Assembly: GCA_052426225.1 (NCBI GenBank)
Contig: JBNJNM010000008.1
Coordinates: 1,798,001-1,862,000 of the forward strand
DNA from: Zancudomyces culisetae HAW-14-8
Lineage: Eukaryota; Fungi; Kickxellomycota
Direction: 5' to 3'
DNA: 64,000 nucleotides
Part shown: positions 15,440 to 36,620 of the stretch, piece after piece
Layout of the letters: the number at the start of each line of letters is the position of its first letter
Position numbering within the stretch: the first letter of the stretch is position 1
Made by a program: the position numbers and the translations under genes
The notes under the pieces: model-generated
Told to the model about the DNA's origin: nothing
Databases searched by the model: none
Seen by the model: only the letters and a program-made list of their open reading frames with translations

Positions 15440-16531
15440 TCAAAACAAAAAAATATTTGAAATCAAAACTGACGTAACCAGTTTCAAAAATAAATTAACT
15501 GGGCGCAAGCTAGACCTTAGACTGGGAGAGGATCCAAACATTAAATCAGAATCAGGAATGGACATCGTGGAATAATCGGGTGTGGGCCTTGGCTTTCTAT
15601 CCAAAAGATACGTTGCGTTAAGCCCAGTGACCTCCACAATCCAATCTATATAGTTGTATGCATGGGTGAAGTAGTTGGTTGACCCATTAGTACCGTGTAT
15701 AATATTTGTGGAGTTTGGAGGAACACCAAGCCCACTCGCCACTCCAACAAGCAACGTACTACCGTTATGGGTGTATGTTAGCGGTCCTCCAGCATCTCCA
15801 TTATATATACTTTTATCATTCTCGACTACTGTACAAATTATACTCCCGTTGTTGTCTGACCAGCTGGTGTTTCCTTGTTTACAAACATCTGAAGATGATG
15901 GTGATACAGATATTTTCGTTAAGTTGACAGATAATTCGATTGGCTCCTCAGTCGATATACGACCCCAGCCCGCTGCAACCAACTGCAATTCATCCGTAAT
16001 TTTTTCACTATACAACGCTATGGGCGTGGCAATGTCTGATGGTACTGGTGATATTAATTGAATTATTCCTATACTATTCATGTCATTAACAACAGTAAAG
16101 TCTGGATGAAGGTACGTGTTTTTTCCACGTATCGTTGGTATAAATGTTTCCAAGACATTGATATTGGTTCCAAACGAAACCTCGATGTTACCAGCCGGAA
16201 CCAGCGTGACATTATCTTTTGCGATAAGGCAATCTGCTGAAGTTAACACCATAGTTTCCGATATCAATGAACCTGTACAAATTCTGGCGTTACTTGCAAA
16301 TTGGGACAATATGCTTCCAATATATGGAAACTCCTGTATATTTGCTGATTGCCCGCCTATAATTCGTGCATTGCCTTGGAAACTTGCTCTAGTATTCTCT
16401 GCTGCCTTATTGTTGAGGTTTACACTATTCGTTGTAACTGCGTTTACCTGGTTTGAGCAAAAGGGTATAAAAGCAACCGTCAATGTTGTTGCTACGGCTT
16501 TTAGCATCGAGTATTTAGTACATGAAATCAT
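15440..16531 (-). CDS. Trypsin-fold (S1) serine protease homologue, probably inactive; secreted and possibly GPI-anchored
   Basis: R-IIGG activation site, CTGSLI, AAGWG; triad motifs altered to LTSADC, NSIGII, GDAGGP; hydrophobic N- and C-termini. Confidence 0.88.
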   Translation of the reverse strand: MISCTKYSMLKAVATTLTVAFIPFCSNQVNAVTTNSVNLNNKAAENTRASFQGNARIIGGQSANIQEFPYIGSILSQFASNARICTGSLISETMVLTSADCLIAKDNVTLVPAGNIEVSFGTNINVLETFIPTIRGKNTYLHPDFTVVNDMNSIGIIQLISPVPSDIATPIALYSEKITDELQLVAAGWGRISTEEPIELSVNLTKISVSPSSSDVCKQGNTSWSDNNGSIICTVVENDKSIYNGDAGGPLTYTHNGSTLLVGVASGLGVPPNSTNIIHGTNGSTNYFTHAYNYIDWIVEVTGLNATYLLDRKPRPTPDYSTMSIPDSDLMFGSSPSLRSSLRPVNLFLKLVTSVLISNIFLF

Positions 16532-17961
16532 ATTATATAGCTTGCATTTGTAATAAATATATATTTGTTAAGGGAGAGTAAAAAAGTAGAATTAAGCAAT
16601 GGGTGGCAAGGATCTTCAGTTCTGATCATTCCACTTTTATGTTTCGCTTCGGCTATAATACATTTTCATTTCCAATTTAATATCCATCTTAATTTCCACT
16701 CACTCCTTCCAGTTCCCTCCCCAATTCACTAATCTGGTTTTGGGATTGACTTTTTCAATTAAACAAATTTCGGCTATTTACAATTGGCTCGCTAGGGTTG
16801 TAGCTAAACAAGTTTTATTTCGATTGCAAAAGAGGTATAATTGTGGGATATTTGATTATGAATTCAAAGGTTCCGGATTGGATTATGCATGCACTATTTA
16901 AATATGCACATACTTAATAGGTGTTGATATTAATTAGCCCAAATGCCATTGGTGCACATATACGTATTATTGGGTGGTCTAAACTCTTACTTAGTGAAAT
17001 GCAATATTAAAATACACAATATACACAAAAACTACAACGAAATAAATCAACAACTGATCACACCATGTTGGGTATAGCCTAAGAAAAAAATTTAAAAATA
17101 TTCTGCATCGTGTTTATCTTTTTTTTTCTTTGTTTTCTGGTGATGGTGGTTTTATGCGTGTAACACGATCAAAAATACAAAGTAAGAAATGGTATGATCT
17201 TAATCAGTATTGATCTGTTAGATTATTTAAGATTGAAATACCGTGGTGGTTTGATAAAACTCTCATAAGCCGGATTAATTTTCATCTATCAAAAAACAAC
17301 CCCATTTTCTCGAAAACATTTGCTAAACCCAACACTCATCGTGGATTATCTTGTAAGCACTTTATAAACATTTCAGTTTAGTTTAGTTTGGCTTGACTCG
17401 ACTTTGTTTTATCTTTTTATTGTTCTCACACACTGTCTTTTTTTTCATAGTGTTTTGTTCCCATCTATAACGGTAGATATAACAATCTATTTGATGCTCA
17501 AGACAAATGGTATTCTTTTGTACATTTTTGAAGTGAACTTTGTCTGATATTTTTATTTGGATGTGTAGTACACAGATGCCAAGTACTCCCCGTCCCTCCC
17601 CCCAACAAAATTTTGATGCTGTCCACACTAGCTGGCAAAAAAAATTTTTTTTTTCTAGATTCAACCAAGAAAATTGAATATTTTGCCAAGAGATTCAAGG
17701 AATATTCGAACGAAAATCCACTGATGCCAACAATTCAAATTCAAGCGTGGCACTACAATATAAAAACCAAGTAAAAAAAAAGTAAGGCCTTCTAAAGCGC
17801 ATTTACACAGCTTTTTCTAGAATGTTTTTTTCCTGTGACTTTTTGTCGGATTTGTACAAATATATAAGACCCCAGAAACTCCCAATTTGTTTCTCTATTC
17901 AAAGTGGTTGGAGTTATTCAAAACGAAAAATATATTAAAGCTAAAAAAATACAAAAACAAA

Positions 17962-18249
17962 ATGCATGAAAGAAATATTTCAGAACCAAACATTTTTTTG
18001 GGAAAAGTTGGTCATGGTATTCAAAAAGTTATCGAGTACAGTTTTGGTTCCAAAAAGCACCGAGTGAAAAACAGAAGTGCGGACATACTGGATATGGAAT
18101 TCACAATGATGCATATGAAAAAACAAACCATGAAGGCCATAGAGGCCAGAAAACTCGGCTATCCCGTTGCAATAACATGCGAGTATAACTGTATCTGGTG
18201 TCGTAAAAATCTTTCTGAACTGGTTACAGGCAAACCCTCATACAACTAG
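17962..18249 (+). CDS. Small basic 95-aa hypothetical protein with C-terminal CxxxCxxC (variant A)
   Basis: Frame, ATG and stop conserved against the diverged copy; whole-codon indels and synonymous changes; TATATAA at 17861; AATAAA at ~18480. Confidence 0.75.
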   Translation: MHERNISEPNIFLGKVGHGIQKVIEYSFGSKKHRVKNRSADILDMEFTMMHMKKQTMKAIEARKLGYPVAITCEYNCIWCRKNLSELVTGKPSYN

Positions 18250-18923
18250 CTCTTCGAATGGGAAGGAAGAGGGGTACACCCACGATTACCACCAAAAGGG
18301 TAACTCAATGGCAGAGTGGGATGTACGTGTAAAGCTTTAGCATTTGGCAGACCCAGAGGATGTTGTTAAAAACTAAGGATTCGTGATGTATTTATAGTTC
18401 GCGGTTGCTCTTTTTTGTTCAATATGAATTCTATTAGTTTTCATTTGCGGGTAGCTTATTTAGCGTGTATTCTATTAGTAATAAACATTTTTTTTGTAAT
18501 TAGTTCTTTGTCCCCCCTTGCCTCCTTGTGATATTTAAGTATTTATAACAAACATGTGGAAGCTTTCAACAGTTAGCAAAAAAAAACCTTCTAACATACA
18601 TTGAATAGGAAGAATGAATGAAAAAAAGTGACCAAAGTATCCAATTTTCATATGCGTTTCTAAATATTTTGTTTTGGATTGATTGGTAAATATTTTGGTT
18701 AGGGCTAACGCAGTGATCATCAAGCTCAAGTTTGAAACTCTTTTTTGGGTTTTTTCATTTTGCATGGTTTCAGGAGGGTAATGGCGTTTATCTGTTTGTT
18801 ATCTTTTGAGTTCAAATTGTTGATATACTGCTTAGCCGTCTTTGGTGAACTCGAACGTAGACATTCTGTGTGTTAAATAAACTGACTCTCTTTCTTGTAG
18901 AAATAACCTATACGTTACCTAAA

Positions 18924-19413
18924 ATGTCAGAGCTGGACCAGCAGTATATACAGGAAGTTCAAGAGATATTCCAAATCAAAGGTAATAGCTTCTACCAATC
19001 GAAAAAGTGATAGAATAGGATAAGAAAGAAGAGGAGAGAGGGGGGCCCGCTTGTTATTTTCATTAAAAATATATTGCATATAACATATAAACAATAAACT
19101 TATCTTTATACTGCATTTGCGTAGATATCGGGAATTGCAAATTTCATTCCGAAAATGACTGGAATACTGGGTTTTATAATATGTATGGTACGTGCGCGTA
19201 TTTATCCATCTCATGTCACATATTTTTTTATAGTAGTAAAGTGAAACGCAAGTATTTACTTGCTCATGAAAGCAGTGCACTTTTACTTGAACCCTTTATA
19301 CAAGCGATTTTAAAATATGAAAAAATGAAATTTCACATATGATAGGTGGGCAACTGATAGCTCAAAGCCTAGCAGCCGCCGCATTAACAGTTAAACCCGA
19401 ATTTATTCTTCAT
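18924..19413 (+). pseudogene. Truncated copy (exons 1-3) of the thioesterase gene at 38394
   Basis: MSELDQQYIQEVQEIFQIK/DIGNCKFHSENDW..MYG/GQLIAQSL..ILH, then runs into LTR sequence within intron 3. Confidence 0.88.
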
Positions 19414-19522
19414 GTACGTCATCTTTACCCTCTTAAATTTATGATTGGCTTTATTTCAATAGTATAGATACTAAATAATCTAGATTAAAAGACTTAAAGT
19501 TTACTAATTGTCACGACTTGAC

Positions 19523-19925
19523 TGTCAGGACCTGACACTAAGTACTATAATTATAACTTGATACTTGATTTATTAAATAAAATACTATCGAATGAAAGTA
19601 TTTTATTGCTAAAGATCTTCTTTGCAATAAAATTCTTTCATTTATATAATTTACCAAAACAGAATTATAAAACGTAAAATAAAACTTAATCAAAATGAAA
19701 CAGGAGAATGTTCAAACTAAAACATTGTAAATATTTTAACTGCTATATTTTTATGAATTGCAGATGTTGAAAAATTCTCCACAACGGGTAAAATATTTAA
19801 TAAGTTTTTACAAATAAATTCATTTGAGGATGAATTTAATTTGTGTCGAGAATGTTAAATAAATTTATATATACTATTTTTAAGTGAAATTAAAAATAGC
19901 AGTTATGACATGATAAATCATGACA
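19523..19925 (-). repeat. 3' LTR of element A
   Basis: TGTCAGGACCTGACACTAAGTACTA...ATCATGACA, adjacent to the PPT. Confidence 0.9.
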
Positions 19926-19946
19926 TCACTTCCCTCTAATGCCTTT

Positions 19947-21824
19947 TCATGGTCCAGGCTTATTCGGATATGCTATATGAAAATCAGTAACTAAATCAGG
20001 GGCATGGACATCAGTAGCGTCTTCCCATGCTCTATCCTCTGGCGCATATCCTTTCCAGCCGATTAGATATTTCAATTTACCTTTGGATATTTTAGAGTCG
20101 AGTATAGCAGATACTTCGTACTCTTCTTGGTTATCAACAATAACAGGTGGAGGTGGTAGTTCTTGAATACGGTTAAACATTTCAGTGGCCTTGTATGGTT
20201 TCAAGAGTGATACATGAAATACAGGGTGTATTCTTATGGTTGCAGGAAGTTTGAGTCTTTCTGCTACTGGGTTAACCATCTCAATGATTTCAAATGGGCC
20301 GATGTATTTGAAATCCAGTTTTTGAAATGGTCTCATGGTTTTAATGTAAGTTTGTGATAACAAAACCTTATCACCAGCAGTAAATGTAACTTGAGGGTTT
20401 CTTTTGCGATCAGCAAACCTCTTGTAATTGTCTTTGGATTTATTCTGATATATTTTTAATTCATCTTGAAGTGACTTAAGATGATTTTCAAATGCTTGAG
20501 CACTTAGTACATTGGAATCATTGAGGTGGCTAATAATAAACTGGGGATCATACCCATAATTAGCATGGAATGGACTGACTTTAGTACTAGAATGAGTTGC
20601 GTTGTTATACGCAAACTCAGCCATTGGGAGCAACTGACACCAATTATCTTGTTGATAGTTAACAAAACACCTCAAATACTGTTCAAGTATTTGATTGATG
20701 CGTTCAGTTTGACCATCAGATTGTGGGTGGTATGCAGTAGAGTGATGGAGTTTGATGTTTAGAAGTCGTGAGAGTTCGGTCCAAAACTTGGATACAAACT
20801 GTGGACCACGATCGGAGACAATGCTACTTGGAAGTCTATGTAGTTTAAATACATGATCCATAAAACTAGAAGCAGTAACAGAAGCAGATGGTGTACTTTT
20901 GAGTGGAATGAAATGAGCCATCTTGGTGAGGCGATTCACAACAACCAGTACAACAGTGTTGCCTTGTGAACGTGATAGTTCCACAATCAAATCCATTGAT
21001 ACTGATTCCCAAGGACGATTGGGAGTATTCAATGGCATTAAGAGTCCCGATGGCTTAGTAGAGATGTGTTTTGCTCGGTTGCAGGTATCGCAAGAGTCAA
21101 TGTAGTCTTTTATTGTGGCTTTCATGTTTGGCCACCAGAACTGACGTGAAACCAAGGACATGGTTTTAGCGTGGCCAAAATGACCAGCTGGCAGTGAGTC
21201 ATGACACATGGCAAGAACTTGAAGACGTATTGATACAGGAACAAACATCCTATCGTTGTACAATAAGATATTATCAGAACAGGAGACTTTTGAGTTGTTT
21301 AGAAGTTCTTGAGCTTGAGTATCAGATTCAGTAATTGCTTTGATTTGAGAAATGATATCACTAGTCTGGCTGGTGTCAATAGATGCAATTACAAACTTGG
21401 GTTGCCAGATAGATCTATCTTCAAGATTCACCCCCTCCTTATGCTCATCCTTCCTAGATAGAGCATCTGCTTTACCGTTTTGTGATCCTGGACAATAAGT
21501 AAGCTCGATATCAAACCGGGTTAGGAACAGGGCCCATCTTGCTTGACGCTGATTTAAAATCTTGGCGGAGCGGAAATACTCAAGATTCTTGTGGTCGGTG
21601 ATGACCAAAACCGGATGAGTGGCACCTTCTAGATGATGTCGCCACTGCTCGAGGGCACATTTGATGGCTAGAAGTTCCTTGTCATAGATGTGGTAGTTTC
21701 TTTCAGCAGGATTCAGCGTTCGGGAATAGAAAGCTACAGGATGAGTTTCGCCATTAATTTTCTGAGATAACACAGCTCCTAGAGCAAATTTGAATGCATC
21801 ACATTCGAGGAGAAACTGAGTTTC
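19947..21824 (-). pseudogene. Element A pol, 3' part: RNase H, integrase, chromodomain
   Basis: ECDA, DKELLAI, TDHKNL; HHCC zinc finger; D-D-E (SMD, SDRG, QTER); GPF; YEVSAILDS..YLIGWKGY..WE. Confidence 0.93.
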
Positions 21825-22728
21825 TGTCATGAATATGACATGAAAAGATTTTGAATTAGTATTGTTACAATACTGATTCAAAACACTCATTTTAATTGAA
21901 ACATTTTGTTGTTTTAATTATTTACTTAAGTAATGATACTAACACAAAACCATAATTATAATTATAACATTAATCTTACAATAGTTAATTATAATATTAG
22001 TACATGCTTTTATTAGTAATATTATTGAATATATAAAGTAATATTTTTTCGCTATGAAATCCTTATGTCACAGAACGAGTTTTATTAGTTAAACAGGTTG
22101 TAATTCTTAAGGAATTACAGCTAGGCAAATGTTATTAATTAAATACTAAGTAAATATTAGAATAATTGTTATGGGAGGTTAGATGTCACCTTATTGGCCA
22201 TGACATTATCCCCCTTTTAAAACCATTACAAAAGTGTTGTAAATATTTTTATGTTTATATTTATTTTATATTTTTATTTATAAGTTATTTAAATTAAAGA
22301 TAGATTTAAAGATTAATAAAGTTGTTAATAAAATTAATGTTTTGTTATAATGATATCTTTCACTTTTGTCAAAAATCTAGGGTTTATATAGTTTTATTTC
22401 TCCTTGATTCACATTCTCGTTTGTATCAGGTTTTGGAGTTTTTCTGACAAGTTTCACTAAATATTGTGTTTCTTATCTTCTTCCCCTTGTTTTATCTTGT
22501 TTTAACTACTCCTGATTAACATCTCATATCTTTTCCCCGTTTTTCACTAACGAGGTACATTGTAATTTATCATTAAGATAAATTACATTGATTTATTCTG
22601 AAACATAAAAGTGCGATGATAATAATAGACGGTAATAATACTAATAAAAATAATCAAATGTATGGGGAAAAACCCAGTGGGAAAAAATGTCCATACCTAT
22701 ACTATAAAAACTAATACGACAAAAGTAA

Positions 22729-22800
22729 TTGTGTTTGGCCTAGACGTAGGCTTCTCGCACTTTGCCCTAGTGGCCCGGGTTCGAATCCCGTTGAGTACGA
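22729..22800 (+). ncRNA. tRNA-derived (Gly/Glu-like) head with Pol III A- and B-box; not a canonical tRNA
   Basis: TGGCCTAG..TAGGC D-arm-like; GGCCCGGGTTCGAATCCCG T-arm with B box at 22778-22788; anticodon and acceptor stems do not pair properly. Confidence 0.7.
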
Positions 22801-23169
22801 TCCTCGGTGTAATTAATTATCGTAATTGTCAAGTGGTTTAGTCATCGGCAGGAATTTTATTGGTGTATGTGGGTTTCAGTGTCATAGTTACAATCTGGCT
22901 CCTCCAATAAATGACCGCTACGGTGATAAAACCCAAATTGTGTTTCACATGGCCCAAGACGGTTCCTTATCGGTAATAGTACTTTTATATTATTTTTATA
23001 TATGTTATATATATATATTGTTACTTTATATCCCATTTTTGTTATTCAAGTTGATGTTTTTTTTTGACTTTTTTATGAAATATATTTCAGTGTTCAATGT
23101 TTTTCTTATATTTTTGTTCTTAATTTTTGTTTTTGTTTTTTTTTTTTTTTTTTTTTTTAAAATTGATAG

Positions 23170-26100
23170 TTATGTTGGCTTTGAAGGGAAATGAGAATGG
23201 AATTCTTTTATGAGTTGATTTGCAGATATATGTTCTTTTGGTTCCCAAGTTCGTTCATTTATATCGTATCCCTTCCAATGTATCAAGTAATAAAGTTTAT
23301 TTCTTATAAGCTTTGAATCGAGTATTTCCTCAATTTCATACTCTAATTCATTGTTGATAATAACGGGTTCCGGCGTGGCTGGTTGATCAGAAATCACTGG
23401 AGGTGAGAATTTTTCCAATAGTGACACATGAAAGACTGGGTGTATTTTCATTGAGACGGGGAGGTCAAGTTTGTAAACTAAATCACTAAGCTTTTCTTTA
23501 ATTTTGAATGGTCCAATTTTCTTATAGTCAAGTTTTTTACTAGGCCTAGTAGTCTGAATATTCTTTGTTAGAAGCCAAACTTTTTCACCTATAGTATATT
23601 CAGGGTTTTTTCTTCTTTTCTTGTCTGCAGATTTTTTGAATGCTGAAGAAGCGAGAGTGATTTGCCTATTGGTTTCTTTCCAAATATGATGGATTTGGTT
23701 GATTCTTTCTTCCACAGAAGGCATAACATGGCTATTGATTAATGGTGGGTCAAAGCGTGGGTGGTATCCATAGTTGATGAAGAACGGGGATGATCCAGTA
23801 GATTCGTGAGTAGAGTTGTTATAGGCAAATTCTGCCAATGGTAGAAGATCTGTCCAATTATCTTGTTGATATGACAAAAAACAACGGAGATACTGTTCCA
23901 GAGTCTGATTGACTCTTTCGGTCTGTCCATCAGTTTCAGGATGGAACGCTGTTGAGAGCTTAATTTTGACACCTAAAGTGTTGAAAAGAGCTTTCCAAAA
24001 CTTTGATGCAAACTGAGAGCCTCGATCAGAGATGATCTCTTCAGGTAAACCGTGGAGTCTGATGATGTTATTGAGGATGATTTCAGAAGTTTCCATAGAT
24101 GAAGGCAGTTTCTTTAGTGGTATAAAATGGCTCATTTTACTGAACCGATCTACAACCACTAAAATTGTAGTATTCCCTTTTGAAAGGGGCAAATCTGTGA
24201 TGAAATCCATTGAAATAGATTTCCATGGCGAATCAGGAGCGGGTAATGGCTGAAGAAGTCCTTGTTTTTTCTTCCTTGATGTCTTGGATCGGTTGCATCT
24301 GTCGCAACCTGCGATGAATTCCTTGACTGAACGATGCATATGTGGGAACCAGAAGTCTCTTTTCAGTAGTTCTACTGTCTTTTTGTATCCATAGTGGCCT
24401 GTCAACTTGCTATCATGCCTTGAACTGATCACTTTAAACACTGATGCTTTAGGCACAATGACTAAATTTCCAAGAGTAATGAGATTGTCTGGTGTTGATC
24501 CTACAGCGAGATGTTTTTTAGCTGCTTCTGTTTCTGCCCTTTTAGTTAATTCTATTCGCTCATTTTGTGTTTGTAGGACGAGATCATCTAGGAGAAACGG
24601 ATTGGTGGTTATTAGACTGTCGATAAAAACTGAGGCTGGGAGTATTGTTTTGTCTTGTAAGGCGCGGTCATGATCCAAGTAACGTGATAAAATGTCTGGT
24701 TTTCCACCAAGCTTTCCAGGCCTATAGGTGATCACAAAGTCGTAACGGCTGAACTCCAATGACCATCTTGCATGTCGCCTATTGAGGACCTTTGAAGTCT
24801 TGAAGGTTTCAAGGTTTTTATGGTCTGTCAAAACGATGAACTGGTGTTGAGCTCCTTCTAGGTAGTGTCTCCATTCCTTAAGAGCCTTCACTATTCCTAG
24901 TAATTCCTTGTCATAAACATTATAATTAAGCTCGGCTGCCTTGAGTTTGTAGGAATAATAAGCACAGGGGCGGAAGTCACCTTTCTCGTCGGCTTGCGAC
25001 AGAATTGCACCAATGGCATAGTCTGATGCGTCAGTCTCAACTATGAACTGCTTACCGGGGTCAGGATACTGTAACACGGGTGAAGTCGTAAGCATGGTTT
25101 TCAGGGTGTCATATGACTTTTGCTGATCAGGACCCCAAATGAACTTGATGTCTTTTTTCAGCAGATTTGTCATCGGCAACGTGATTTGAGCATACTCAGG
25201 GATGAACTTCCTATAGTAGTTAGCAAATCCCAGGACAGATTGGATATCCTTGCAATCCTTTGGAACCTTCCATTTGTGGATTGACTGAATCTTGGCTGGA
25301 TCTGTACTGATTCCATTTGAAGTCACGCGGTGTCCTAAGAAATCCACTTCCTGTTTATGGAATTCGCATTTTTCCAAGTTGCAGTACAATCCATTTGTTA
25401 ACAATTTTGCTAAAACTTTGTTTACATGGCTGATGTGGTCCTGGAAATTGTCGGAAAATATCAGAATGTCATCAAGGTAAGCGATGGCGTAACGATCAAG
25501 CACATCTCTTAGAACATCATTGATGAAATGTTGGAAGGTCGCGGGCGCATTTGTCAAGCCAAAAGGCATGACATTGTATTCAAAATGTCCATAGCGGCAT
25601 CTGAACGCGGTCTTCCATTCGTCCCCCTTCCTGATCCTGACTAGATTATAAGCACCTTTCAAATCTAGTTTGGTGAAATATTTGGCAGATCTAAGCCTAT
25701 CAAAGGCTTCATCGATCCTGGGCAGAGGGTATCTGTTTTTCATAGTCATATCGTTGAGCTTACGATAGTCTACACAAAGGCGGAGGTCACCAGATTTCTT
25801 CTTAACGAACATGATTGGAGCACCAGCAGAGGATTTGGACTTTCTGATGAATCCATTTGCTAAGTTTTCAGTAATGTAGTCACGAAGAGTCTGGAGTTCC
25901 CTTTCAGATAATGGGTAAATAGGGCCCCATGGTGGTTTAGATTCTTTTTTGATGTCGATTTGGCAGTCATATGATCTGCGAGGAGGGAGTTTAGAGGCTA
26001 GGGATAGGTCAAATACCTTGGCTAGGGAGGCATGTTCAGGTGGGATTTCAGGAATGAGATTGTTATTTGCTGAATGTTTTTCCGTGATTGGCTGTAACTG

Positions 26101-27330
26101 TGGAATTTCAGAAATTACGCGACTGATTGGTTTAAAATTTTTTGTCCTTAATGTTTTTTTGTTTACTGGTTTTTTTGTTGTCTTTTTTATAAAATTATTT
26201 GGTTGAATCGGAATAGTAAGAAGTGGCATTCCTATGTCAAATGCGGAAGAAACAGGTTCAGGTGGTGTCAAATCTGGTTGGGCTGAAATATTGGGAGCTG
26301 GAGTACTGAGAATCTCAGGAGTAATAGGTGTACTTGGGTAAAAAGTTACTGGAGGTGGTAAATTTACCATTGGTGGGGGACGTCCCAGGCGAGGTGAAAT
26401 ACTCTCGCGAGTGTGGTAATAACGGATTTGAGGTGAGGTTACGGTGGAAGTCAATGAACGTTCGGAATCGGAATCAGAATGGTATGCGGATAAATGGCTG
26501 TCATCTGACTGGTAGGCTTCCAAATTATGGTTTGTCTGTTGGATTGGGACTTGTGGCTGCCTGAGTGATGCGGTTATTTCGGTAATTTGCTGTAATACGT
26601 TGCTTGGGTTCAAATTTTGCCAATGTATTGCTTCTGGTTGAGTATCATAGAATCTTCCGAGATCATCTTCGGATTCGCTCTCTGAAGATGTATCATTTTC
26701 CGAATAGCCATCCGAATCATCTTGGCTTATATCTTCTGAGTCCATGCTGTAATCTGATTCTGATACGCTCATTCTGTCAACCTTATTTTCTTCATCTAAT
26801 ACTAATTTATCATCCATCAGCTGACTTAGTTTTTTGATGTCGTTTTTTGAAATTCTGCGGTTCGGATCAATATTAAGATTGTTTACGGCTATAGGCTTAG
26901 TAGTGTGGGTTTTTGTATCCATCGTCAGCTTTTTCCAGTTGATATCAGGGTTATGTTTTTGTAACCATGGAAGGCCTAATACAATTTCGGCATGAGTGGC
27001 GGGTATCACGTATAGGTCCGAGGTGAAGTGGTATTTATCCTTGGTACTGAGCTTGATGTTCCGGACTACTGCATTGATACCTGAATTTGTGAGTGGTTTT
27101 CCGTCAATAGTTTCAACAGGTATCGGACTTGATAGATCTTCAGTGGGCAAGTCTAGTTGCTTTACAAGGTTTAAACTAATAAAATTTTCTGATGCACCTG
27201 AATCAATTAGTGCATTAACAACTATCGAATTATTAATTATTAACTTTATTAAAAATTTATTAGCTTGAAATCCTTGTAAGGTGAGCCCCAGTAATACCTT
27301 GCCGGTTATTCCTGGGGTTCGACGTTTAAA
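23170..27330 (-). CDS. Element B Pol (PR-RT-RH-IN-chromodomain), expressed by -1 frameshift
   Basis: LIDSGA, YPLPRID, MPFGLTNAPATFQ, YLDD, TDAS, HHCC, DDE, GPF, YEIEEILDS..YLIHWKGY..TWEP. Confidence 0.96.
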   Translation of the reverse strand, partial: FKRRTPGITGKVLLGLTLQGFQANKFLIKLIINNSIVVNALIDSGASENFISLNLVKQLDLPTEDLSSPIPVETIDGKPLTNSGINAVVRNIKLSTKDKYHFTSDLYVIPATHAEIVLGLPWLQKHNPDINWKKLTMDTKTHTTKPIAVNNLNIDPNRRISKNDIKKLSQLMDDKLVLDEENKVDRMSVSESDYSMDSEDISQDDSDGYSENDTSSESESEDDLGRFYDTQPEAIHWQNLNPSNVLQQITEITASLRQPQVPIQQTNHNLEAYQSDDSHLSAYHSDSDSERSLTSTVTSPQIRYYHTRESISPRLGRPPPMVNLPPPVTFYPSTPITPEILSTPAPNISAQPDLTPPEPVSSAFDIGMPLLTIPIQPNNFIKKTTKKPVNKKTLRTKNFKPISRVISEIPQLQPITEKHSANNNLIPEIPPEHASLAKVFDLSLASKLPPRRSYDCQIDIKKESKPPWGPIYPLSERELQTLRDYITENLANGFIRKSKSSAGAPIMFVKKKSGDLRLCVDYRKLNDMTMKNRYPLPRIDEAFDRLRSAKYFTKLDLKGAYNLVRIRKGDEWKTAFRCRYGHFEYNVMPFGLTNAPATFQHFINDVLRDVLDRYAIAYLDDILIFSDNFQDHISHVNKVLAKLLTNGLYCNLEKCEFHKQEVDFLGHRVTSNGISTDPAKIQSIHKWKVPKDCKDIQSVLGFANYYRKFIPEYAQITLPMTNLLKKDIKFIWGPDQQKSYDTLKTMLTTSPVLQYPDPGKQFIVETDASDYAIGAILSQADEKGDFRPCAYYSYKLKAAELNYNVYDKELLGIVKALKEWRHYLEGAQHQFIVLTDHKNLETFKTSKVLNRRHARWSLEFSRYDFVITYRPGKLGGKPDILSRYLDHDRALQDKTILPASVFIDSLITTNPFLLDDLVLQTQNERIELTKRAETEAAKKHLAVGSTPDNLITLGNLVIVPKASVFKVISSRHDSKLTGHYGYKKTVELLKRDFWFPHMHRSVKEFIAGCDRCNRSKTSRKKKQGLLQPLPAPDSPWKSISMDFITDLPLSKGNTTILVVVDRFSKMSHFIPLKKLPSSMETSEIILNNIIRLHGLPEEIISDRGSQFASKFWKALFNTLGVKIKLSTAFHPETDGQTERVNQTLEQYLRCFLSYQQDNWTDLLPLAEFAYNNSTHESTGSSPFFINYGYHPRFDPPLINSHVMPSVEERINQIHHIWKETNRQITLASSAFKKSADKKRRKNPEYTIGEKVWLLTKNIQTTRPSKKLDYKKIGPFKIKEKLSDLVYKLDLPVSMKIHPVFHVSLLEKFSPPVISDQPATPEPVIINNELEYEIEEILDSKLIRNKLYYLIHWKGYDINERTWEPKEHISANQLIKEFHSHFPSKPT

Positions 27331-28217
27331 ATTGGCTCTGATGGTCTTGGGACACGTAACGGACAATTTCTCAATATGTGGCCGGGTTGACCACAATAAA
27401 TGCAAAGGCTATTGAGGATACGTCTCTGGCGCTCTTCGGCTGTTAACGGTCCTCTAGGCTTTGGGATAACGGCATCAATATCCATTGGTTCTGGGGTCTG
27501 AGGACGGTACTGTCTTGGCTGGCGCTGGAAGTTCTGGTTCTGGTACGCGTGTTGCTGAAACTGATTTTGCTGGTAATTTGGGAACGGCTTGTTCATTGGC
27601 TGAAATGGTCTGGGCTGTCTTGGAAGCGGGTTTGCTGCTGGATATGGACTTCTGAACTCGGATCTGTTCATATAGCTGAGGTTGGAATTAATTGTGTTTT
27701 CCAACTCAACTACTAGAGTTATTACTTCATCCAACTTTTCTGGCATTTTGGTAGCGATCAGATGTCGGGTAATCCTGTTACTTAGACCTCGCCTAAATAT
27801 GTCAATATTGGCGGCTTCACCAAAATCACATATTCTGGCCAAGTTCCTAAAGTCCACTGCGTAAGCCATAACGGAAAGAGTACCTTGCTTGAGTTGGTGG
27901 AGCTGCTGAACTGCACGTGACTTGTGGCCGGGATCTGAGAATCTGAGCTTAAAACTTTTCATGAACTCTTCATATGAGGACAAGAGTTTAGGTGCGGTTT
28001 CTGGGAGCTGGGCTTCGGATTCAAGGATATCGTCAAACCAAGTGGCGGCATGACCTGAGAAGTGAGCACTGATGAAAGCAATCTTTTTCTTTTCTGTAGG
28101 AAAAGCATCTGATTTTGCCCAAAACTGTCTGCGGATCTGAGCCATGAAGGGAACAAATTGTTCCGCGGCTCCGGAAAACTTTTCAATTTCGGGTGTTTTT
28201 GGCTCGGTTTCACCCAT
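27306..28217 (-). CDS. Element B Gag
   Basis: EKFSG, GHAATW, LKQGTLSVMAY, EPMDID, zinc knuckle CIYCGQPGHILRNC. Confidence 0.95.
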   Translation of the reverse strand: MGETEPKTPEIEKFSGAAEQFVPFMAQIRRQFWAKSDAFPTEKKKIAFISAHFSGHAATWFDDILESEAQLPETAPKLLSSYEEFMKSFKLRFSDPGHKSRAVQQLHQLKQGTLSVMAYAVDFRNLARICDFGEAANIDIFRRGLSNRITRHLIATKMPEKLDEVITLVVELENTINSNLSYMNRSEFRSPYPAANPLPRQPRPFQPMNKPFPNYQQNQFQQHAYQNQNFQRQPRQYRPQTPEPMDIDAVIPKPRGPLTAEERQRRILNSLCIYCGQPGHILRNCPLRVPRPSEPILNVEPQE

Positions 28218-28506
28218 AATCTTAAGATTATTTAATTTATTTTTCTAACTAAACTAGACTGATTAACTAGGAGTTAGAAGAATTACAAAATGTCACAGAA
28301 CGAGTTTTATTAGTTAAACAGATTGTAATTCTTAAGGAATTACAGCTAGGCAAATGTTATTAATTAAATACTAAGTAAATATTAGAATAATTGTTATGGG
28401 AGGTTAGATGTCACCTTATTGGCCATGACACCTTAGCGATAAAATATTATCTTATCCTAAATAAAATATTTTCAAGCAACAATAGTACCTAGTGTCAATC
28501 GTGACA

Positions 28507-30815
28507 GTTTCTGGGTCAGGATGTGCGAGAACGGGAGCTGTGGTACATTGTTTCTTGAGATTTTCAAAAGTAGATTGTTGTGCTGAGCCCCAGATAAACT
28601 GGGCATTTTTCTTGAGTAAGGAGGTGATCGGAGTTACAATACGTGAGAAGTCTTGGATAAAACGGCGATAGAAGTTAACAAATCCAAGGAAGGATTGGAT
28701 GTCCTTGACTGATTTTGGTGTATCCCAATCCAATATTGCAGATACTCGTGACGGATCCATGACTAGGCCTACAGGTGTGATTATGAAGCCTAAAAACTCT
28801 ACTCTTTCTTGGTCAAACTCACACTTTTCAAGTTTGGCGTAGAGTTTGTGAGCGATTAGTCTTACTAAAACAGTACGAACATGGATAGTATGTTCTTCAG
28901 GTGTTGCAGAAAATACCAGAATGTCATCAAGGTATATGACAACATAGACGTCTAGGATATCACGAAAAACATCATTGACAAATGATTGAAAGGTTCCAGG
29001 AGCATTAGCCAGGCCGAATGGCATAACTTTGTACTCAAACTGACCATACTGTGTTCGGAAAGCCGTTTTTTCTTCATCGCCTTTCCTTATGCGTACCAGA
29101 TTGTACGCGCCACGCAGATCAAGTTTGGTGAAGATTTTGACAGATTGGACTCGTTCCAGTAGCTCAGTCATCAACGGTAAAGGATACCGGTTACGTTTGA
29201 CGACTTTGTTTAGAGCTCTGTAGTCCACAACTAGTCTTAAAGAGCCATCTTTTTTACCTGTGAAGAATACAGGGGCTCCAGCAGGTGATTTCGAGCGGAC
29301 TATGAAACCTTTTGCAAGGTTTTCATCGATGTACTCTTTAAGCGCTGTTCGCTCCTTTGGTGCAAGTGGATAAATTGGTCCATATGGTAAGGCGGCATTG
29401 GGTAACAGATCAATTGGGCAGTCGTAAGGGCGATGAGGAGGTAGAGTATCGGCCTTTTGTTTGTCAAAAGCTTGGCTGAGGTCTTGATATTTACTTGGAA
29501 TAGTAGTAGTTAAGGAATCAGGAGGTAGTGAAATTGGTTTGGCTTGGTTTATCATGCCTATCAAATGAAAAACAGAGTGTTTTAACTTTTTGATAGGCAC
29601 CTTTTGTTGAAACTCAATATCACAAGAACGTTTGCGAATTGGTTCAACCGGATCAGCTGGTGGTGGAGTCATCGGGCGTAACTCTTCACAGGTTTCCATA
29701 TCAGCACTCTGAATACTATTTTCAGAGTCGGCACTTTGGAGTGAGATTTCGCTGATATCGGAACTTGGTGAGTAGTACAGCTCAGAATCCAACGAATACA
29801 CTGATTCAAGTTCATAATCTAAATCTGTTTCATATTCTGGATCAGAAATTTTATCATCATTTTCAGAATATGAGGTGGATTCTTGATCCTGAACTGACTC
29901 AATGACTTCTTGGTTGTGTACTTGGTTCTGATAATCCTGGTTTAAGTTTTCCTGGCTATTGACAGTATTTTCCTGGCTATGGTTAATATTTTCCTGGCTA
30001 TTGTTAATTTTTTCCTGGCTGTGGTTTTCCTGGCTGTGGTTTTCCTGGCTGTGGTTTGTCTCCTGGATTAAATTTTCCTGGCTGTGGTTACTTTGGCAAT
30101 GGATAGTCTGACTGTGGCTATCTTTAACATGGTTTTCCTGGTTGTTAGTTTCCAAGTTGTTAGTTTCCTGACTTTGGGTTTCTTGGCTGAGGTTATTCTG
30201 GCTTATTAGTGCTGGTCCTGGTCCTGGTGCTTGTCTTGACATGGATGAGGTATTAGTCTTGATAATCGTTGGATTGGATCTTTGAGTTGAGAACCTTTTG
30301 ATATTGCAGTGTTTTTGGCAATATGCATTATCAAAATGATTTAATCTCTTTTTCCAATTGTTAGTGGGTTCATGGAGTTCAAGCCACGGAAGTCCTAAAA
30401 TCATGTCAACATGGTGGGGGTTTATGATTTCAATAGTGACTACTTCATGGTGAACTTCAATCTCAATTTTGAGCGGGACAGTTTGGTGTGTAATTGGACC
30501 GGCAGACATTGGATTACCATCTACAAACTCCACAGGTATTGGAGTTGTCTTGGAAATGAATGGAATGGAATGGTTAGATACAAAACCTTGGTTTATGAAC
30601 AAACCAGAAGCACCTGAATCTACCATGGCGACGATTTGCAACTTTACGTTACTTGGGAGTTGTAAAGAAACAGTGACAAGAAAACGATGGGGGTTGTAGA
30701 CGTCTCGGATACTGCTGACTTGATGGACAAAGGATCTGGAACGGGGGAAGTCTTTAGTTGGGATGGTTTGGTTCAGGATTGGCTTCCCAATTAAGCCTGA
30801 ACCCGGTGGTTTCCC
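28507..30815 (-). pseudogene. Element A pol, 5' part: protease and reverse transcriptase
   Basis: MVDSGA, ILGLPWL, YPLP, MPFGL, YLDD; frame open back to the GGGAAAC slippery site. Confidence 0.93.
29945..30090 (-). repeat. Coding minisatellite (NHSQE-like units) in the PR-RT linker
   Basis: Repeated TTTTCCTGGCT(G/A)TGG on the + strand. Confidence 0.85.
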
Positions 30816-31662
30816 TGCTTAGTTTTCTTAAGCTTTTCGGGACAGGTGGTAACTTGGTGGCCTTCTCGCCGCAGTAATAGCAGAGACCAAGTTTCATTCG
30901 ACGTTCTCTCTCGGTTGGAGAGACGACACGCTGAACGGAATCCACCTGCATAGGTTCTATCTGAGAACTGGTGGGCTGAACATAAGGCTGAATGCCTCTC
31001 TTTCTCCTGGCCTTGTCTTCCTTGCGCCTGGTTAACCTGGCATCAATGAGAATTGCAGCATTGATGTAATCTTCCAAATCATCAGGAGTTTGGAATAGCG
31101 CAAGGGTGTCGAGCACGGCTTCGCTCAGACCCTCGGCAAACTGGTATACGAGAGCTGACTCGTTTCAGTCGAGATCCATCATTAAACGACGGAACTCTGA
31201 TGCATACATTGAGACAGGTGAGGTGCCCTGTTTCAATGCCCTGATAGCATCATTGGCTGTTTGAGACCGTTGAGGGTCATCAAACACCTTGGCGAACTCT
31301 TTCATGAAGAGTTCGTAATCATGAAGCACAGGGCTACCCTTTTCAATGTAAGGGCTAGCCCAACGGAGCGCATTTCCTGTGAGGAGGGACATAACAAGAC
31401 CAACCTTGTTGGTGGCGGACGGGTAGTGGTCTGGATGGGTGAAGAACAGTAGACGGCATTGATTTACAAAACCACGGAAGTTGTTGCGATCTCCGTCATA
31501 CCTTTCTGGCAAGGCTATGCGGGCAGCGGCTGGCTGGACTGGGATTGGTACTGGTGCGGCCTGGGCGGACTTTTCTTGTTCTGCTGGCGGATCTGGTGGA
31601 GCAGATTGTTGAGATTTCAATCGCTCGTTTTCTTCTTTAAGTCTTTGATATTCGGCTAACAT
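30791..31662 (-). pseudogene. Element A gag, disrupted
   Basis: LPERYDGDR, GNALRWA, LKQG, EPMQVD; TGA at a conserved Trp (DLD*NESAL, 31165); 1-nt deletion in the zinc knuckle (restores CYYCGEKGHQVTTC). Confidence 0.9.
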
Positions 31663-31711
31663 TTCACGGTATTTAGACTTAATAGTAGGTAGTGTAAGAG
31701 CAATAAAATAA

Positions 31712-32104
31712 TGTCAGGACTTGACACTAAGTACTATATGTATTTACTACGACTATGATTTATTTAATAAAATACTATGAGATGAAAAGCATTTTATTGC
31801 TAAAGTTTCCTAAAGCAATAAAATCCTTGTCCATATATAGTTTTACAAATAAAAATTAATTGTAAAACATAATAATAACTATACTTAAAACTATAACTTA
31901 AAACTAAATATATTAACTGTCAACTCCACAGTTAACATTTAATAATTTGGGGTAAAACCAAATTATTAATAAATAAAAATGCTTACTCCATAATTAATAA
32001 TTTATGGAGTAAGAATTAAAGCGGAGAAAATGATAATAAAATTAACATTTGCTATTTTTAATGCCATATTAACAATAGCAATAATGTCATGAATGGATCA
32101 TGAC
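31712..32104 (-). repeat. 5' LTR of element A (terminal base displaced by a solo-LTR insertion)
   Basis: TGTCAGGACTTGACACTAAGTACTA...ATCATGAC; similar to 19523-19925 mainly at the ends. Confidence 0.88.
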
Positions 32105-32242
32105 TGTCATGGCCAATCAGGTGACATCTAATCTCCCATAACATTATACTAATATTTACTTAGTATTTAATTAATTCATTTGCCTAGCTGTAATTCTTTA
32201 TGAATTACAACCTGTTTAACTAATAAAACTCGTTCTGTGACA
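32105..32242 (+). mobile_element. Solo LTR of family B, inverted relative to element B
   Basis: Reverse complement of the 140-bp LTR with a few changes; imperfect TSD ATGAC/ATGTC. Confidence 0.92.
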
Positions 32243-32439
32243 ATGTCACCCAAAATTGTCTCATTTTTAATAATTTTTCAATTTATAATTTCATAATGAA
32301 TTTTTTTCAATAAAAATACAGTTTATAATAATCTGAAAATAACATTTGTGCATGATATAATATAAAAACATATAATATCTGGAAATTATTGAGCGAGATA
32401 TTACACTTTGAAAATTATTTTCAATATTTTGAGACATTT

Positions 32440-35400
32440 TTGAAACTCACTGTACATTGAAAGCGGTGATGGAAAAAGTAAGTCAATAATCGACCACATC
32501 CTAGTTTGTAATTATAGTTTACAATTCTATCGCAACTTCAAGATTGAGGTAGGGCCATTATCGGACTACCGATAAATTGAAGTTTGTTACAGGAAGATCC
32601 AATAAGTTTAGATTCTTCTAAAAAGAACCACGACAATTGGAAACTTAATTCAAGTCACTTAAAAAATGATAAAGCCTATGAATCTATCAAAGGTATTTTG
32701 GACAGTTTTATTCCTACTATATGTTAAGACTTGAATATTTTAAGATTAAATTATTTATTACTATTAATTATTTAGAAAAATATGGTATTCAATAGTGAAT
32801 AAGATATTTTTCTCTGAAGTTCTCTTTCGATGGATTTCGAAAGGGTTTTTATACTTTTACTCCAGAGATTTTTCCATATAAAATTTTCTTAAGTAAAGTT
32901 GCTATCAAACTATAAATTTGACTATTAAACTTATGAGTAACTGATGTGATTAACTACCGTGAGTTTAGTGTGTCAATGATTGCGTCATTCATGTTATTCT
33001 GACGATTCTTTGAATTATTAGTTTCGGAATTCTTTCTAGGTTTTTTATTTCCTAAAATGGTCTGTGAATATTATTATAACATATTTCATCGCGAAATTCA
33101 TTTTTTACTTGACTTGGTTAGATTAATTTAATAATTTGTACTTAGTTACATTTAATTAAATTGTACTTAGTTACATTTAATTAATTTGTACTTAGTTACA
33201 TTATAGTAATTTGTATATGGTTACAATTTCATTTTGTAACCTACTTGATTTGGTCATGGAGAATTATAATAAACATGAATTTATTTAATTTATTTTAAAA
33301 CAATTCCTAACACTATAGATTATTTACTTGAATGGTCTAAAGCGAAATCAATGATTAAAGACTATTTTATTGATATTGGTAAAAAAGTGTATAAAAACAA
33401 AGCAAATTTGCTCAAGTCCAAAATTAATTGTGTAAAGAGTAACGATTTTAATAACGCTTATAAAATCCGGACACTGGAATATGAGCTAAAAAAAGAATTA
33501 GAAAATAAGTGTCGAGGTATGTCTATTAGAAGTAGAGCCAATTACTTTGAAAAGGGTGAGCAAAGCAACAAATACTTTTTCAATTTGTTAAAGTCTAGTG
33601 AAAAGAGAAAAAGAATTGAAGAAATATTAATTGAAGATAACTCTACTTCTAATAATCATAATGAAATTTCTAGTCATATTTATAAATTTTATAGTAAACT
33701 ATTTAATAAAGGAACAACAGTGGTGGGTTGTCAAGATAATTACTAAATAACATAACAAATAGGCTAACTGATCTGGAGGCAGAAGTGCTAGATAGCTCAA
33801 TAACTATCGAGGAAATTCAAAAGACAATCCAAAAATGTCCCAGGAATAAAGCACCTGGACCTGATGGATTGACCTTTGAATTTTACAAGCACTTTGAAAA
33901 AGAGACTACAATAATTCTTCATGAATTACTCAACTCTCCCCTCCAGGATTATAATGAGCAAATTGAAGTTTCAATAATCTCTTTGATTCCCAAAACCGGC
34001 GATCTGAGGCAGATTAAGAACTATCGTCCAATTAATTTATCTAATTGCGACGAGAAAATCTTAACTAGAATTCTAGCCTCTAGGTTGCAGAATATAATAG
34101 GTAAGTTAATTAACCAGTCTCAAACTGGGTTTATCAAAGGTCGTAGCATCTTTGATAATATCCATATGACTAATAACCTTTTGGGTTTTGGTCAACTGGA
34201 CCCAGACAAATATAATGGGCACTTGATTCTTCTGGATCAAGAAAAAGCCTATGATAGAGTAGACTGGGATTATATCATGAAGTGCTTGAATGCTTTTGGC
34301 CTTGGCCCCAAGTTTATTCAATATCTTAAATCAATTTACACTGGTGCTACGACTAGAGTAAATGTCGACTCCGTATTTACGGATGAAATTCAAATCAACA
34401 ATGGTCTTAGACAGGGTGATCCACTATCACCCCTGTTGTATAACCTAGTAATTGAGCCTTTATTACTAGGTTTGAAAAAAGACCTAACAGGTATTCAACT
34501 ATCTGGAGCTAACTTTAATACAATAGCGTATGCCGATGACATTGCGATTGGTATTAAAGATAGTGATGACATTAACATAGTAATGAAATGGCTTGATATT
34601 CACTGCAAAGATCTAATGCTGTCGTGAATATCGAAAAATCAATTGCTATAAAGGTAGGGAATCCTCAAGAGATTTCCACTAAGTTTCCATTAGTCGCCGA
34701 TAATGAAAACTTTAAATACTTGGGAAATGGTTTAATAACAAAGGTGTTAACACCAAATATATTCAAGAACTCTTACTAGCTAAAATGGAAAATAAAATTA
34801 AATCCATGAGACTTAGATATCTCTCACTGCGAGGAAGAGTATTGCTGACAAATGTATTTTTATACTCAAAAATATTTTTTGCAGCACATATTGTCCCTTT
34901 CGACAAAATCTTCTTGTCAAAGGTGAAGAAACTTACCTCAAAGTTTATCTGAGCGAATAAAAAGGCCAAGATTAAACTTACCACCCTTGAACTACCAAAA
35001 AAAACTTGGTGGTCTAGGAATAATTGATGTTAAAACTCAAGTAGATTTAATATATGGAAAAGGGATAGCATCAACTATAAGCGGTAATCCCAATAGCGAC
35101 TGGATTTCATTATCTAGAAGCTACTGGAACCACCAATTTAAAAATATTACAACAAATTATGGTCCACTTTTAGCTACTGAACTGATGGAACTCCATAATA
35201 GCATTAAAAATAAAAGAGATATTCACCCTTCAGTAAAAAAGTTTATTGAAGTATGGAATATTCTATTTAATGTGGATGATAGGAACATTAACACAGTACC
35301 TCTTAGTGAAATTATTAATTGGAGTATATTCTTTATTCAACCATTGATTATTGGAAAAGAATTAACTATCAAAGAAATAAGAGACCTAAAAAAGAAAGGA

Positions 35401-36551
35401 TATAATACTGTGTATGACTTTTTAATGTCATTATCACAAGTAAGCTACGAGGCAAATACAACTGATGAACCAGTATACACTAGTACCGCCTTTGGAAAAG
35501 AGACTCAATTCAGCATTAGTTTATACTGTCTTGAAAAAAAATTCCAACAGTTACCTCAGCCGAACCCGAATTACTTTCTGCCTGAATCGCTAATAAATCT
35601 TGGCAATGGAATCTCAGAAGAGTATGCAATGAACAGAGAATTAAAAAGTTTTATTTATTTTAATTATAACAACACTAGGAAATTCCCCCCAAACTATTAC
35701 AAACTAGATATAGTATCAGCGAACAGTAAAATTTATAGTTGGAATAGTATTAATAGGTTAAAGGTTGAAGAAAAAATTAAATCTCACCTTTATTTAATCT
35801 TACATGGGGCAATCGTAACCGGGAAAACAGTATCGAGTTGAACTGGATCGATAGAAAATTCGTTTTGTAAAATCTGTAAAAAAAACGAAACCGAAACTAT
35901 CAAACACGCCTACTTTGACTGTAGTAGAATCAGGTGTTTTTGGAATAATGTTTTTTCCTTTTAATTTCCAATTTTTAAAAAAAACATTCATTGGACAATC
36001 ACACCTTGAAAAAAATTAGGAAAATTGAAAAAATCGACTTCAATAGGGAAGAAATTATGTCTGGATGCAACAAAATTAGGCACCATATTAAAGACATGTA
36101 AATTATTCTAGCATCAGCCATCTGGAATATTTTCAGAGCAAGAACTGAGGCTGCACTATCAGAAAAAAACTACAACGCATTTCAACTATTCTTGAGATGG
36201 AAAGAATACATGCGGATGTACTACAAAGTATACAACAAAAACAATGATGAGGAGAAAAACCTGTTTGAATTTGAACCTGATTGACCAAAAAAAATGTCAC
36301 TCCAACATTTTATAAATCTCCTAACTATCTTCAATTTTCACAACAGTTTTCCAATAACAACCTCCCCAAATACAAAAGTTAATAACCACAAATTCAATAA
36401 GCGGATTCTCTATCTACCCAGAATAACTCGACTATTTCCAGGATACATTCCCTATGATCAGATTTTTCATTTAGTTACACTTACTTAACTAGTATTTCTT
36501 TCAATTTGATTTATTTTGTTCTTGATGCTAATAAACTCTATCTAAAAAAAA
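32440..36551 (+). mobile_element. 5'-truncated, decayed L1/Tx1-like LINE (ORF2: end of APE, RT, zinc knuckle)
   Basis: SIIDHILV, WKLNSS, KAPGPDGL, YRPINL, LDQEKAYDRVDW, GLRQGDPLSPLL, YADD, LSLRGRV, GGLG; several stops and frameshifts; AATAAA at 36530 and A8 at 36544-36551. Confidence 0.93.
32722..33312. mobile_element. Solo LTR of a third family (591 bp) inserted in the LINE
   Basis: TGTTA..TAACA termini; TSD CTATA (32717-32721, 33313-33317); removing it rejoins DSFIPTI-DYLLEWSKAK; internal ~25-bp tandem repeat at 33135-33226. Confidence 0.85.
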
Positions 36552-36620
36552 GTAAAAAAATATTCTTAATCGTATATATCTTTTTTTTCTCTTTCTTTTC
36601 TGGTGATGATGGTTTTACAT

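Follow-up and report, generated by a model that had tools for sequence, protein, structure and literature searches.

Two deeply diverged versions of a small orphan gene within near-identical duplicated units of Zancudomyces culisetae HAW-14-8

Analysis of a 64,000-nt stretch of the Zancudomyces culisetae HAW-14-8 genome (GCA_052426225.1, contig JBNJNM010000008.1, positions 1,798,001 to 1,862,000 of the forward strand), hereafter the window, within which all coordinates are given, showed two near-identical units of about 2.3 kb, A and B, each enclosing a small open reading frame (ORF) of no known family. ORF A (17962..18249, plus strand, 95 aa) and ORF B (37426..37719, plus strand, 97 aa) had only 54 of 97 aligned residues in common, and the divergence was concentrated in an island of 362 nt that began 13 nt upstream of the ATG and ended 61 nt downstream of the stop codon. 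The reading preferred here, to which about an even chance is given, is that the two ORFs may be long-maintained versions of one orphan gene that now lie in cis, gene conversion having homogenised their flanks and selection having kept the gene versions apart.

Unit A (17098..19422, plus strand) and unit B (36560..38892, plus strand) formed the sole long direct repeat pair in the window (17079-19442 and 36542-38912 on BLASTN and global alignment) and were located on one contig with a start-to-start distance of 19,463-19,470 nt. A search of the whole 27-Mb genome (25 contigs, 27.09 Mb searched) returned two copies of the unit, and the outer flanks of both were single-copy. The repeats were ruled out as long terminal repeats (LTRs) or a transposon by their copy number of only two, and leftover haplotigs were ruled out by the single-copy flanks. 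The cis arrangement was judged real because the unit was two-copy, its outer flanks were single-copy and the nest of transposable elements (TEs) between the copies formed one coherent molecule; on this basis, units A and B are read as a true 2.3-kb segmental duplication in cis.

Outside the island the interiors of the two units were almost the same. Positions 17160-17909 contained no A/B substitution in a column-by-column alignment. A three-way alignment with the orthologous sequence of strain COL-18-3 gave 1 difference in the upstream interior (17161-17948), a 1-nt indel at 17915, and 3 differences in the downstream interior (18311-19382), so that 4 differences were present in the 1,860 nt of interior either side of the island. 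The edges of the units were also diverged, with 10 differences in the 63 nt of the left edge (17098-17160) and 2 in the 40 nt of the right edge (19383-19422). This had been pointed out in the original prediction, which was made from the sequence of the window before this analysis; it fits an edge effect of conversion and keeps alive the neutral alternative of a mismatch barrier that is weighed below.

The island (17949..18310 in copy A and, by alignment to copy A, 37413..37780 in copy B; plus strand) contained 92 differing columns in the three-way alignment. When aligned pairwise, the copies differed by 82 substitutions, a raw divergence of 23% (82/362), and the coding part of the island was more diverged (72/285) than its non-coding part (14/74). 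The borders were sharp, apart from a graded 3' border. A tract of 46 nt (18119..18164, equal to 37586-37631 in copy B, plus strand) was identical in both copies; it was located where the two proteins are identical and encodes the invariant central helix segment. A uniform process was excluded by the 0 substitutions in 788 nt beside 82 in 362 nt, together with the 46-nt identical run amid about 23% divergence. The substitution spectrum was symmetric between the copies, with 51 transitions and 31 transversions, counts of 15 for G>A, 10 for A>G, 12 for C>T and 14 for T>C, and the four bases equally hit. Because the spectrum was symmetric and had no C>T or A-specific bias, the island represents ordinary long-term divergence and is old. 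Repeat-induced point mutation (RIP), deaminase clusters and mutagenesis of the diversity-generating retroelement (DGR) type were ruled out by the same lack of directional or base-specific bias.

These results agreed with the original prediction on the near-identical flanks, on the limits of the divergence around the gene, on the sharing of 54 of 97 residues between ORFs of 95 and 97 aa, on indels of whole codons with no stop in either frame, and on the retention of three cysteines and a tryptophan near the C-terminus. The identical tract that it described was also present, with a length of 46 nt in place of 44 nt.

Downstream of the stop codon (18250-18320 and 37720-37790), the A/B differences were located in the loops of two predicted hairpins with unchanged stems (CTCTTC/GAAGAG and a longer GTACACCCAC stem), and the folding energy was non-significant (z about -1.5). 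Neither the 3' region nor the identical tract gave a significant RNA fold (z from -1.6 to +0.35, the identical tract having z = 0.35), and Rfam and tRNA searches were blank.

Comparison with a second strain showed different histories for the flanks and the island. The exact protein of ORF A was encoded on LSSK01000062.1 of GCA_001969505.1 (Zancudomyces culisetae COL-18-3); LSSK00000000 belongs to Zancudomyces culisetae (PMC5954228), for which the published Illumina assembly is from strain COL-18-3 (PMC5026252, PMC12611240). The COL-18-3 contig was 97.5-98.7% identical to the left flank of the window and unit A, and then passed directly into the DNA that borders copy B on the right, with a single unit, an A-type ORF and no retrotransposon nest. 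The BLAST check proposed with the original prediction thus returned two unit copies in HAW-14-8 and one, of the A type, in the other strain. Over the 1,860 nt of flanking interior, the state shared by A and B differed from COL-18-3 at 47 sites, compared with the 4 differences between A and B. Inside the island, A was the same as COL-18-3 at 92 of the 92 A/B-differing columns, and copy A differed from the COL-18-3 orthologue by one base. At the 10 differing positions of the left edge COL-18-3 was A-type at 5 and B-type at 5, and at the 2 positions of the right edge it was the same as A. Over a 14-kb alignment, HAW-14-8 and COL-18-3 were most diverged, at about 4.2%, in a stretch of 800 nt upstream of the ORF, and elsewhere their divergence was about 0.5-1.5%. 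Judged from these alignments, the flanks coalesce within HAW-14-8 far more recently than the strain split, and the island appears roughly ten times deeper than that split. The units are thus read as undergoing concerted evolution in their flanks, with orthology kept inside the island.

The ORFs behaved as coding frames in several tests. Both indels between them were of one codon each, and the frame was open in both copies despite 72 substitutions (P about 0.09-0.12 under neutral substitution). The 41 replacements had a mean BLOSUM62 score of +0.29, compared with -0.46 +/- 0.24 in simulations (P about 0.001), while the five other frames of the same alignment had means of -0.54 to -1.06 and 2-9 stops. 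The codon-usage score, taken against eight host genes from the window, was +0.14 and +0.17 for the two ORFs; it was positive only in the ORF frame, exceeded that of 84 of 84 non-coding chunks and was within the range of the host genes. Both ORFs had an A at position -3 of the start codon, and because of the 1-nt indel at 17915 the copies have no shared upstream extension of the frame. Since the conservative replacements were specific to the frame, the indels were of whole codons and the codon usage was gene-like, ORF A and ORF B are considered real, fast-evolving, protein-coding single-exon frames, which bears out the earlier view that both look functional. The ORF was ruled out as an upstream exon of the neighbouring thioesterase gene, as no donor was conserved, the stop was kept in both copies and the frame was closed after the stop in B. 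A test for preferential conservation of hydrophobic positions was negative.

The encoded protein was basic (pI 9.5 for A and 9.3 for B) and hydrophilic, without an N-terminal hydrophobic stretch; the protein of ORF A had no signal peptide and three predicted helices. Near the C-terminus, C73, C77, W79 and C80 were invariant. AlphaFold2, run on the two-sequence alignment, placed helices at residues 10-28, 38-65 and 78-89. As a conjecture, a partner-binding role with two specificities would suit a small helical protein inside the cell, in which the central helix is fixed and the ends vary.

No relative of the protein was found in Pfam, PDB, fold or billion-scale protein searches, in agreement with the earlier failure to recognise a family. 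Pfam at E 0.01 and up to E 10 gave no match save a 13-bit domain of unknown function (DUF). A word search of 5.8 billion clustered proteins returned only ORF A itself, and a full HMMER scan of 1.84 billion representatives added one match, P0002, a chance overlap of 18 residues that was ruled out as a relative because it is the translation of a tandem repeat. The ESM Atlas had no usable feature match, and its structure matches, obtained from a low-confidence model (pLDDT 0.48), were uninformative. A PDB profile search with the ORF protein was blank, and the Foldseek and VIA-align wide fold searches returned no relative, with a best Z of 5.8 on generic helical hairpins. HMG, homeodomain, HET, NACHT and pheromone-precursor features were not matched in Pfam, PDB sequence or fold searches. 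The B-type protein was absent from the public collections searched, two metagenome scans and the recorded assemblies. The gene is therefore an orphan as far as public data go, apparently known only from Zancudomyces so far.

The gap between the two copies was filled exactly by a 17.1-kb retrotransposon nest (19443..36558) that consisted entirely of retroelement DNA. At the end of unit A was an unrelated truncated TE end of 71 nt (19439-19509). It was followed by a gypsy element, gypsy A (LTRs at 19524-19925 and 31713-32104, minus strand), the LTRs of which were only about 76% alike. A young second gypsy element, gypsy B (22065-28430), was nested in gypsy A; its 141-nt LTRs differed at 1 of 141 positions and it had a clean 5-bp target duplication, CCTTA. 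This clean duplication indicates that both halves of gypsy A belong to a single molecule and that a false join in the nest is unlikely. A solo LTR (32105-32242) and a long interspersed nuclear element (LINE)-like element (32249-36558, plus strand), which had a variable A-rich tail, completed the nest, and the tail met the left end of unit B at a TTTAAAAA^TATTCT site. A 5'-truncated member of this LINE-like family (L011 7504-8242, contig C12) lay within a gypsy LTR and had a target duplication of 15 nt, which indicates that the family inserts by target-primed reverse transcription. The identity of gypsy A to a full-length reference (L021) dropped from 93% to 80% along its length, and its flanking pentamers differed, a tentative reading as the end is interrupted by another LTR. 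LTRs are identical at insertion, and with LTRs only about 76% alike gypsy A would be a recombinant at the DNA level.

Unit A retained the ancestral left flank and unit B the ancestral right flank, and the right end of unit A was located inside intron 1 of an acyl-CoA thioesterase gene. Because the duplicated unit ends within this intron, copy A carries at its end an orphaned thioesterase exon 1 (19339..19413, plus strand), made up of 25 codons and a GTACGT donor after them. The working exon 1 was found at 38809-38883, with a predicted continuation into 39484-40248, the part on which the assignment rests (Pfam 4HBT_3C / Acyl_CoA_thio), and the two exons differed by one Glu/Asp exchange. A gene for a trypsin-family protein (15440-16531, minus strand; Pfam E 6.5e-24) was located directly upstream of unit A.

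Because both inner borders of the units were retroelement junctions, the duplication is ascribed to a retroelement event, and two candidate origins were considered from the structure of the junctions. In the first, unequal exchange would have occurred between two gypsy elements that flanked the unit oppositely on two homologues, and this candidate fits the recombinant gypsy better. In the second, a LINE insertion would have produced a target duplication of kilobase length. LINE-1 insertions with kilobase-long target-site duplications, up to 5.3 kb, have been described (PMC5223499), and the present case resembles them in its 2.3-kb segment and in the A-rich LINE 3' tail that adjoins one copy, unit B, at a typical target. 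Recombination between repeats of this type, with loss of the insert, is also expected, and would account for the one copy seen in COL-18-3. The present case differs from them in that the 5' end of the LINE does not adjoin the other copy; the end of unit A has instead the 71-nt TE fragment and the LTR of the mismatched gypsy element, a better fit to unequal exchange between elements.

The LINE-like element was also used for relative dating. In a tree built from ten copies of the family its terminal branch was 0.03, and its private substitutions amounted to 1.9%. The element is taken to be as old as the duplication or older, since a younger one would need to have hit, exactly, a border that was already there, and its branch implies that unconverted neutral A/B sites should differ by no more than about 6%. 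At 23% raw divergence and a synonymous divergence (dS) of 0.45, the island exceeded this bound 4-5 times. The duplication is thus probably younger than the island, unless the LINE copy itself was homogenised, and the two gene versions would then be older than their cis arrangement and, most simply, would have co-existed as alleles. This strengthened the swapped-cassette version of the original prediction, in the form of a captured allele, as the terminal branch of the bounding LINE, about 3%, is far below the divergence of the island. The interior difference of 0.2%, being lower than that of the edges, would then require gene conversion after the duplication.

From these data we infer the order of events, the selection and any function as follows. 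Two old versions of a small orphan gene would have pre-existed as alternative alleles, and a retroelement-mediated exchange would have brought both into one haplotype. Interlocus gene conversion would since have kept the remainder of the units near-identical, with conversion tracts that stop at the gene, and selection for two protein specificities would keep the types apart. At about 23% divergence, the mismatch barrier of the heteroduplex would also block conversion, even without selection. The 46-nt identical tract is as expected from a tolerated micro-conversion or from strong constraint.

Several results weigh against this reading of two versions maintained by selection. By Nei-Gojobori (NG) estimates, the ratio of non-synonymous divergence (dN, 0.28) to dS was 0.62, not significantly below 1, so that the counts gave no sign of positive or strong purifying selection, and the synonymous fraction of the differences was 25.9%, compared with a neutral expectation of 26.3% from simulations that applied the observed transition bias and were conditioned on no stops. 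The chance that the island spans the entire ORF was about 0.04, which is suggestive only, and a neutral mismatch barrier could also preserve an island. The unit edges, with 12 differences in 103 nt from about 8 mutational events, were only borderline compatible with a duplication of the age of the LINE, and the dating depends on small numbers, namely one LINE copy and 103 nt of edges. The single unit in COL-18-3 could be a true absence, a loss by recombination between repeats or a collapsed Illumina assembly. The AlphaFold2 model was weak, with a pLDDT of 61 overall and 70-83 for residues 40-90, and nothing in it pointed to a function. The original suggestion of long-maintained variants protected from conversion was thus upheld in the old, ordinary divergence, the concerted flanks and the coincidence of the island with the gene; it was not upheld with regard to diversifying selection, for which the ORF pair gave no evidence, the synonymous fraction being equal to the neutral expectation. 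The dN/dS check that had been proposed likewise gave counts that match neutrality, and replacements that were conservative in the ORF frame only.

The best-surviving alternative, which is held to be unlikely by itself and yet ahead of the other rivals, is neutral patchy conversion, in which a segment of an old duplicate passed the mismatch threshold and ran away without selection, the ORF being a weakly constrained or dispensable young gene. The neutral synonymous fraction is what it predicts, and the differences by codon position (26/19/27), the diverged unit edges (10/63 and 2/40), as where conversion is inefficient, and the chance occurrence of open frames of 76-117 codons elsewhere in the unit are in its favour. 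It is opposed by the placement of the island over the one frame with protein-level constraint, by the higher divergence of coding than of non-coding sequence within the island, and by the age of the island relative to the LINE that defines the duplication boundary. Under neutrality non-coding DNA should also escape first, yet it was the homogenised part.

Rather improbable is a foreign or introgressed cassette, in which recombination with a diverged lineage or a cryptic species would have supplied the B island, without long-term balancing selection in Z. culisetae. Relative to the COL-18-3 orthologue all differences of the island lie on B, the borders are sharp and the B-type protein was missing from every public collection searched, all as an imported tract would leave them. 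Such a tract of 362 nt, exactly framing one gene, would however be far shorter than usual introgressed blocks, and a donor was not found. Repeated exchange between co-existing types is what the identical tract inside the island and its graded 3' border resemble.

The chance is slight that the arrangement is an assembly artefact, with A and B as the alleles of one locus in a heterozygous diploid whose haplotypes hifiasm and FinisherSC placed in tandem. Z. culisetae and seven other Harpellales have been proposed to be diploid, with an SNP ratio (single-nucleotide polymorphisms) of 0.64% and an allele-frequency peak at 50% (PMC5954228), and the HAW-14-8 assembly (27.18 Mb, 26 contigs, GC 35.6%) was produced from PacBio-HiFi reads with hifiasm and then post-processed with FinisherSC (PMC12611240). 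The proposed diploidy, which bears on how any near-identical duplicate of this assembly is read, and the post-processing both favour an artefact, and the interior A/B difference of 0.2% is within the range of a heterozygosity of 0.64%. Against this, the junctions of unit A with the TE and of the LINE with unit B must both exist in the reads, and the nest is coherent, so that one and the same composite element would have to lie on one side of the unit in one haplotype and on the other side in the other. The single-copy outer flanks and the small excess of the assembly (27.2 Mb) over the k-mer estimate (26.2 Mb; PMC12611240) also argue against it. Just as doubtful is a reading without a gene, in which A-rich DNA has produced the open frames by chance and the island is another non-coding element. 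The lack of a homologue, domain or confident fold would allow it, but against it are the conservative replacements specific to the ORF frame, the whole-codon indels with gene-like codon usage, and the lack of an Rfam match or significant RNA structure.

The preferred reading, of two old gene versions held apart within converting units, was compared with known systems. A divergence peak within gene-converted duplicates marks a target of selection, as in the red/green opsin gene pair of humans, 24 kb apart (PMC3924837), and such peaks are known from these opsins and from Drosophila and yeast pairs and are treated in the Innan/Teshima model (PMC3924837, PMC2588116). The Zancudomyces units are similar to this class in that a distance of about 20 kb separates the paralogues in cis, the flanks are more similar within the genome than between strains and the divergence peak is narrow and located on functional sequence. 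They differ in that the peak is a whole orphan gene at 23% and not a few residues, and in that the assembly of the second strain has one copy and the peak seems older than the duplication. The young GOT1 paralogues of Tigriopus (PMC3728101), which have islands of divergence with novel combinations, likewise show converted tracts interspersed with unconverted ones, though GOT1 is a conserved enzyme gene of known function and the present gene is an orphan.

A further likeness is to fungal idiomorphs and allorecognition loci (mating-type, het), which have two discrete, deeply diverged versions with sharp borders in near-identical DNA, and flanks that are evidently recombining. Unlike these loci, both Zancudomyces versions were in one haplotype, and the ORFs had no HMG, homeodomain, HET, NACHT or pheromone feature. 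The link to allorecognition, mating-type, drive or host-interaction loci in the original prediction was therefore not borne out, as no domain connects the protein to any of these. Ancient divergence confined within sharp borders around a lineage-specific gene is nevertheless a standard genomic flag for compatibility, allorecognition and drive loci, and to our knowledge nothing is known of such systems in Harpellales or in Zoopagomycota generally. There is a small chance that the pair is a hitherto undescribed two-specificity recognition system of Zoopagomycota (self/non-self, sexual compatibility or poison-antidote drive) based on the 95-aa helical orphan protein, with two ancient alleles joined and fixed in one haplotype by retroelement-mediated exchange.

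The importance of the pair would be high if it were shown, by its function or by data from populations, to be a recognition system of two types. Regardless of function, the locus provides a clean natural case of concerted evolution that halts at the limits of a gene, of a segmental duplication of retroelement origin in which two alleles may have been captured in cis, and of an orphan gene the reality of which is arguable from comparison of its paralogues alone. It may thus be a further example of a divergence island in a gene-converted duplicate, possibly with captured alleles, in a gene of no known family.

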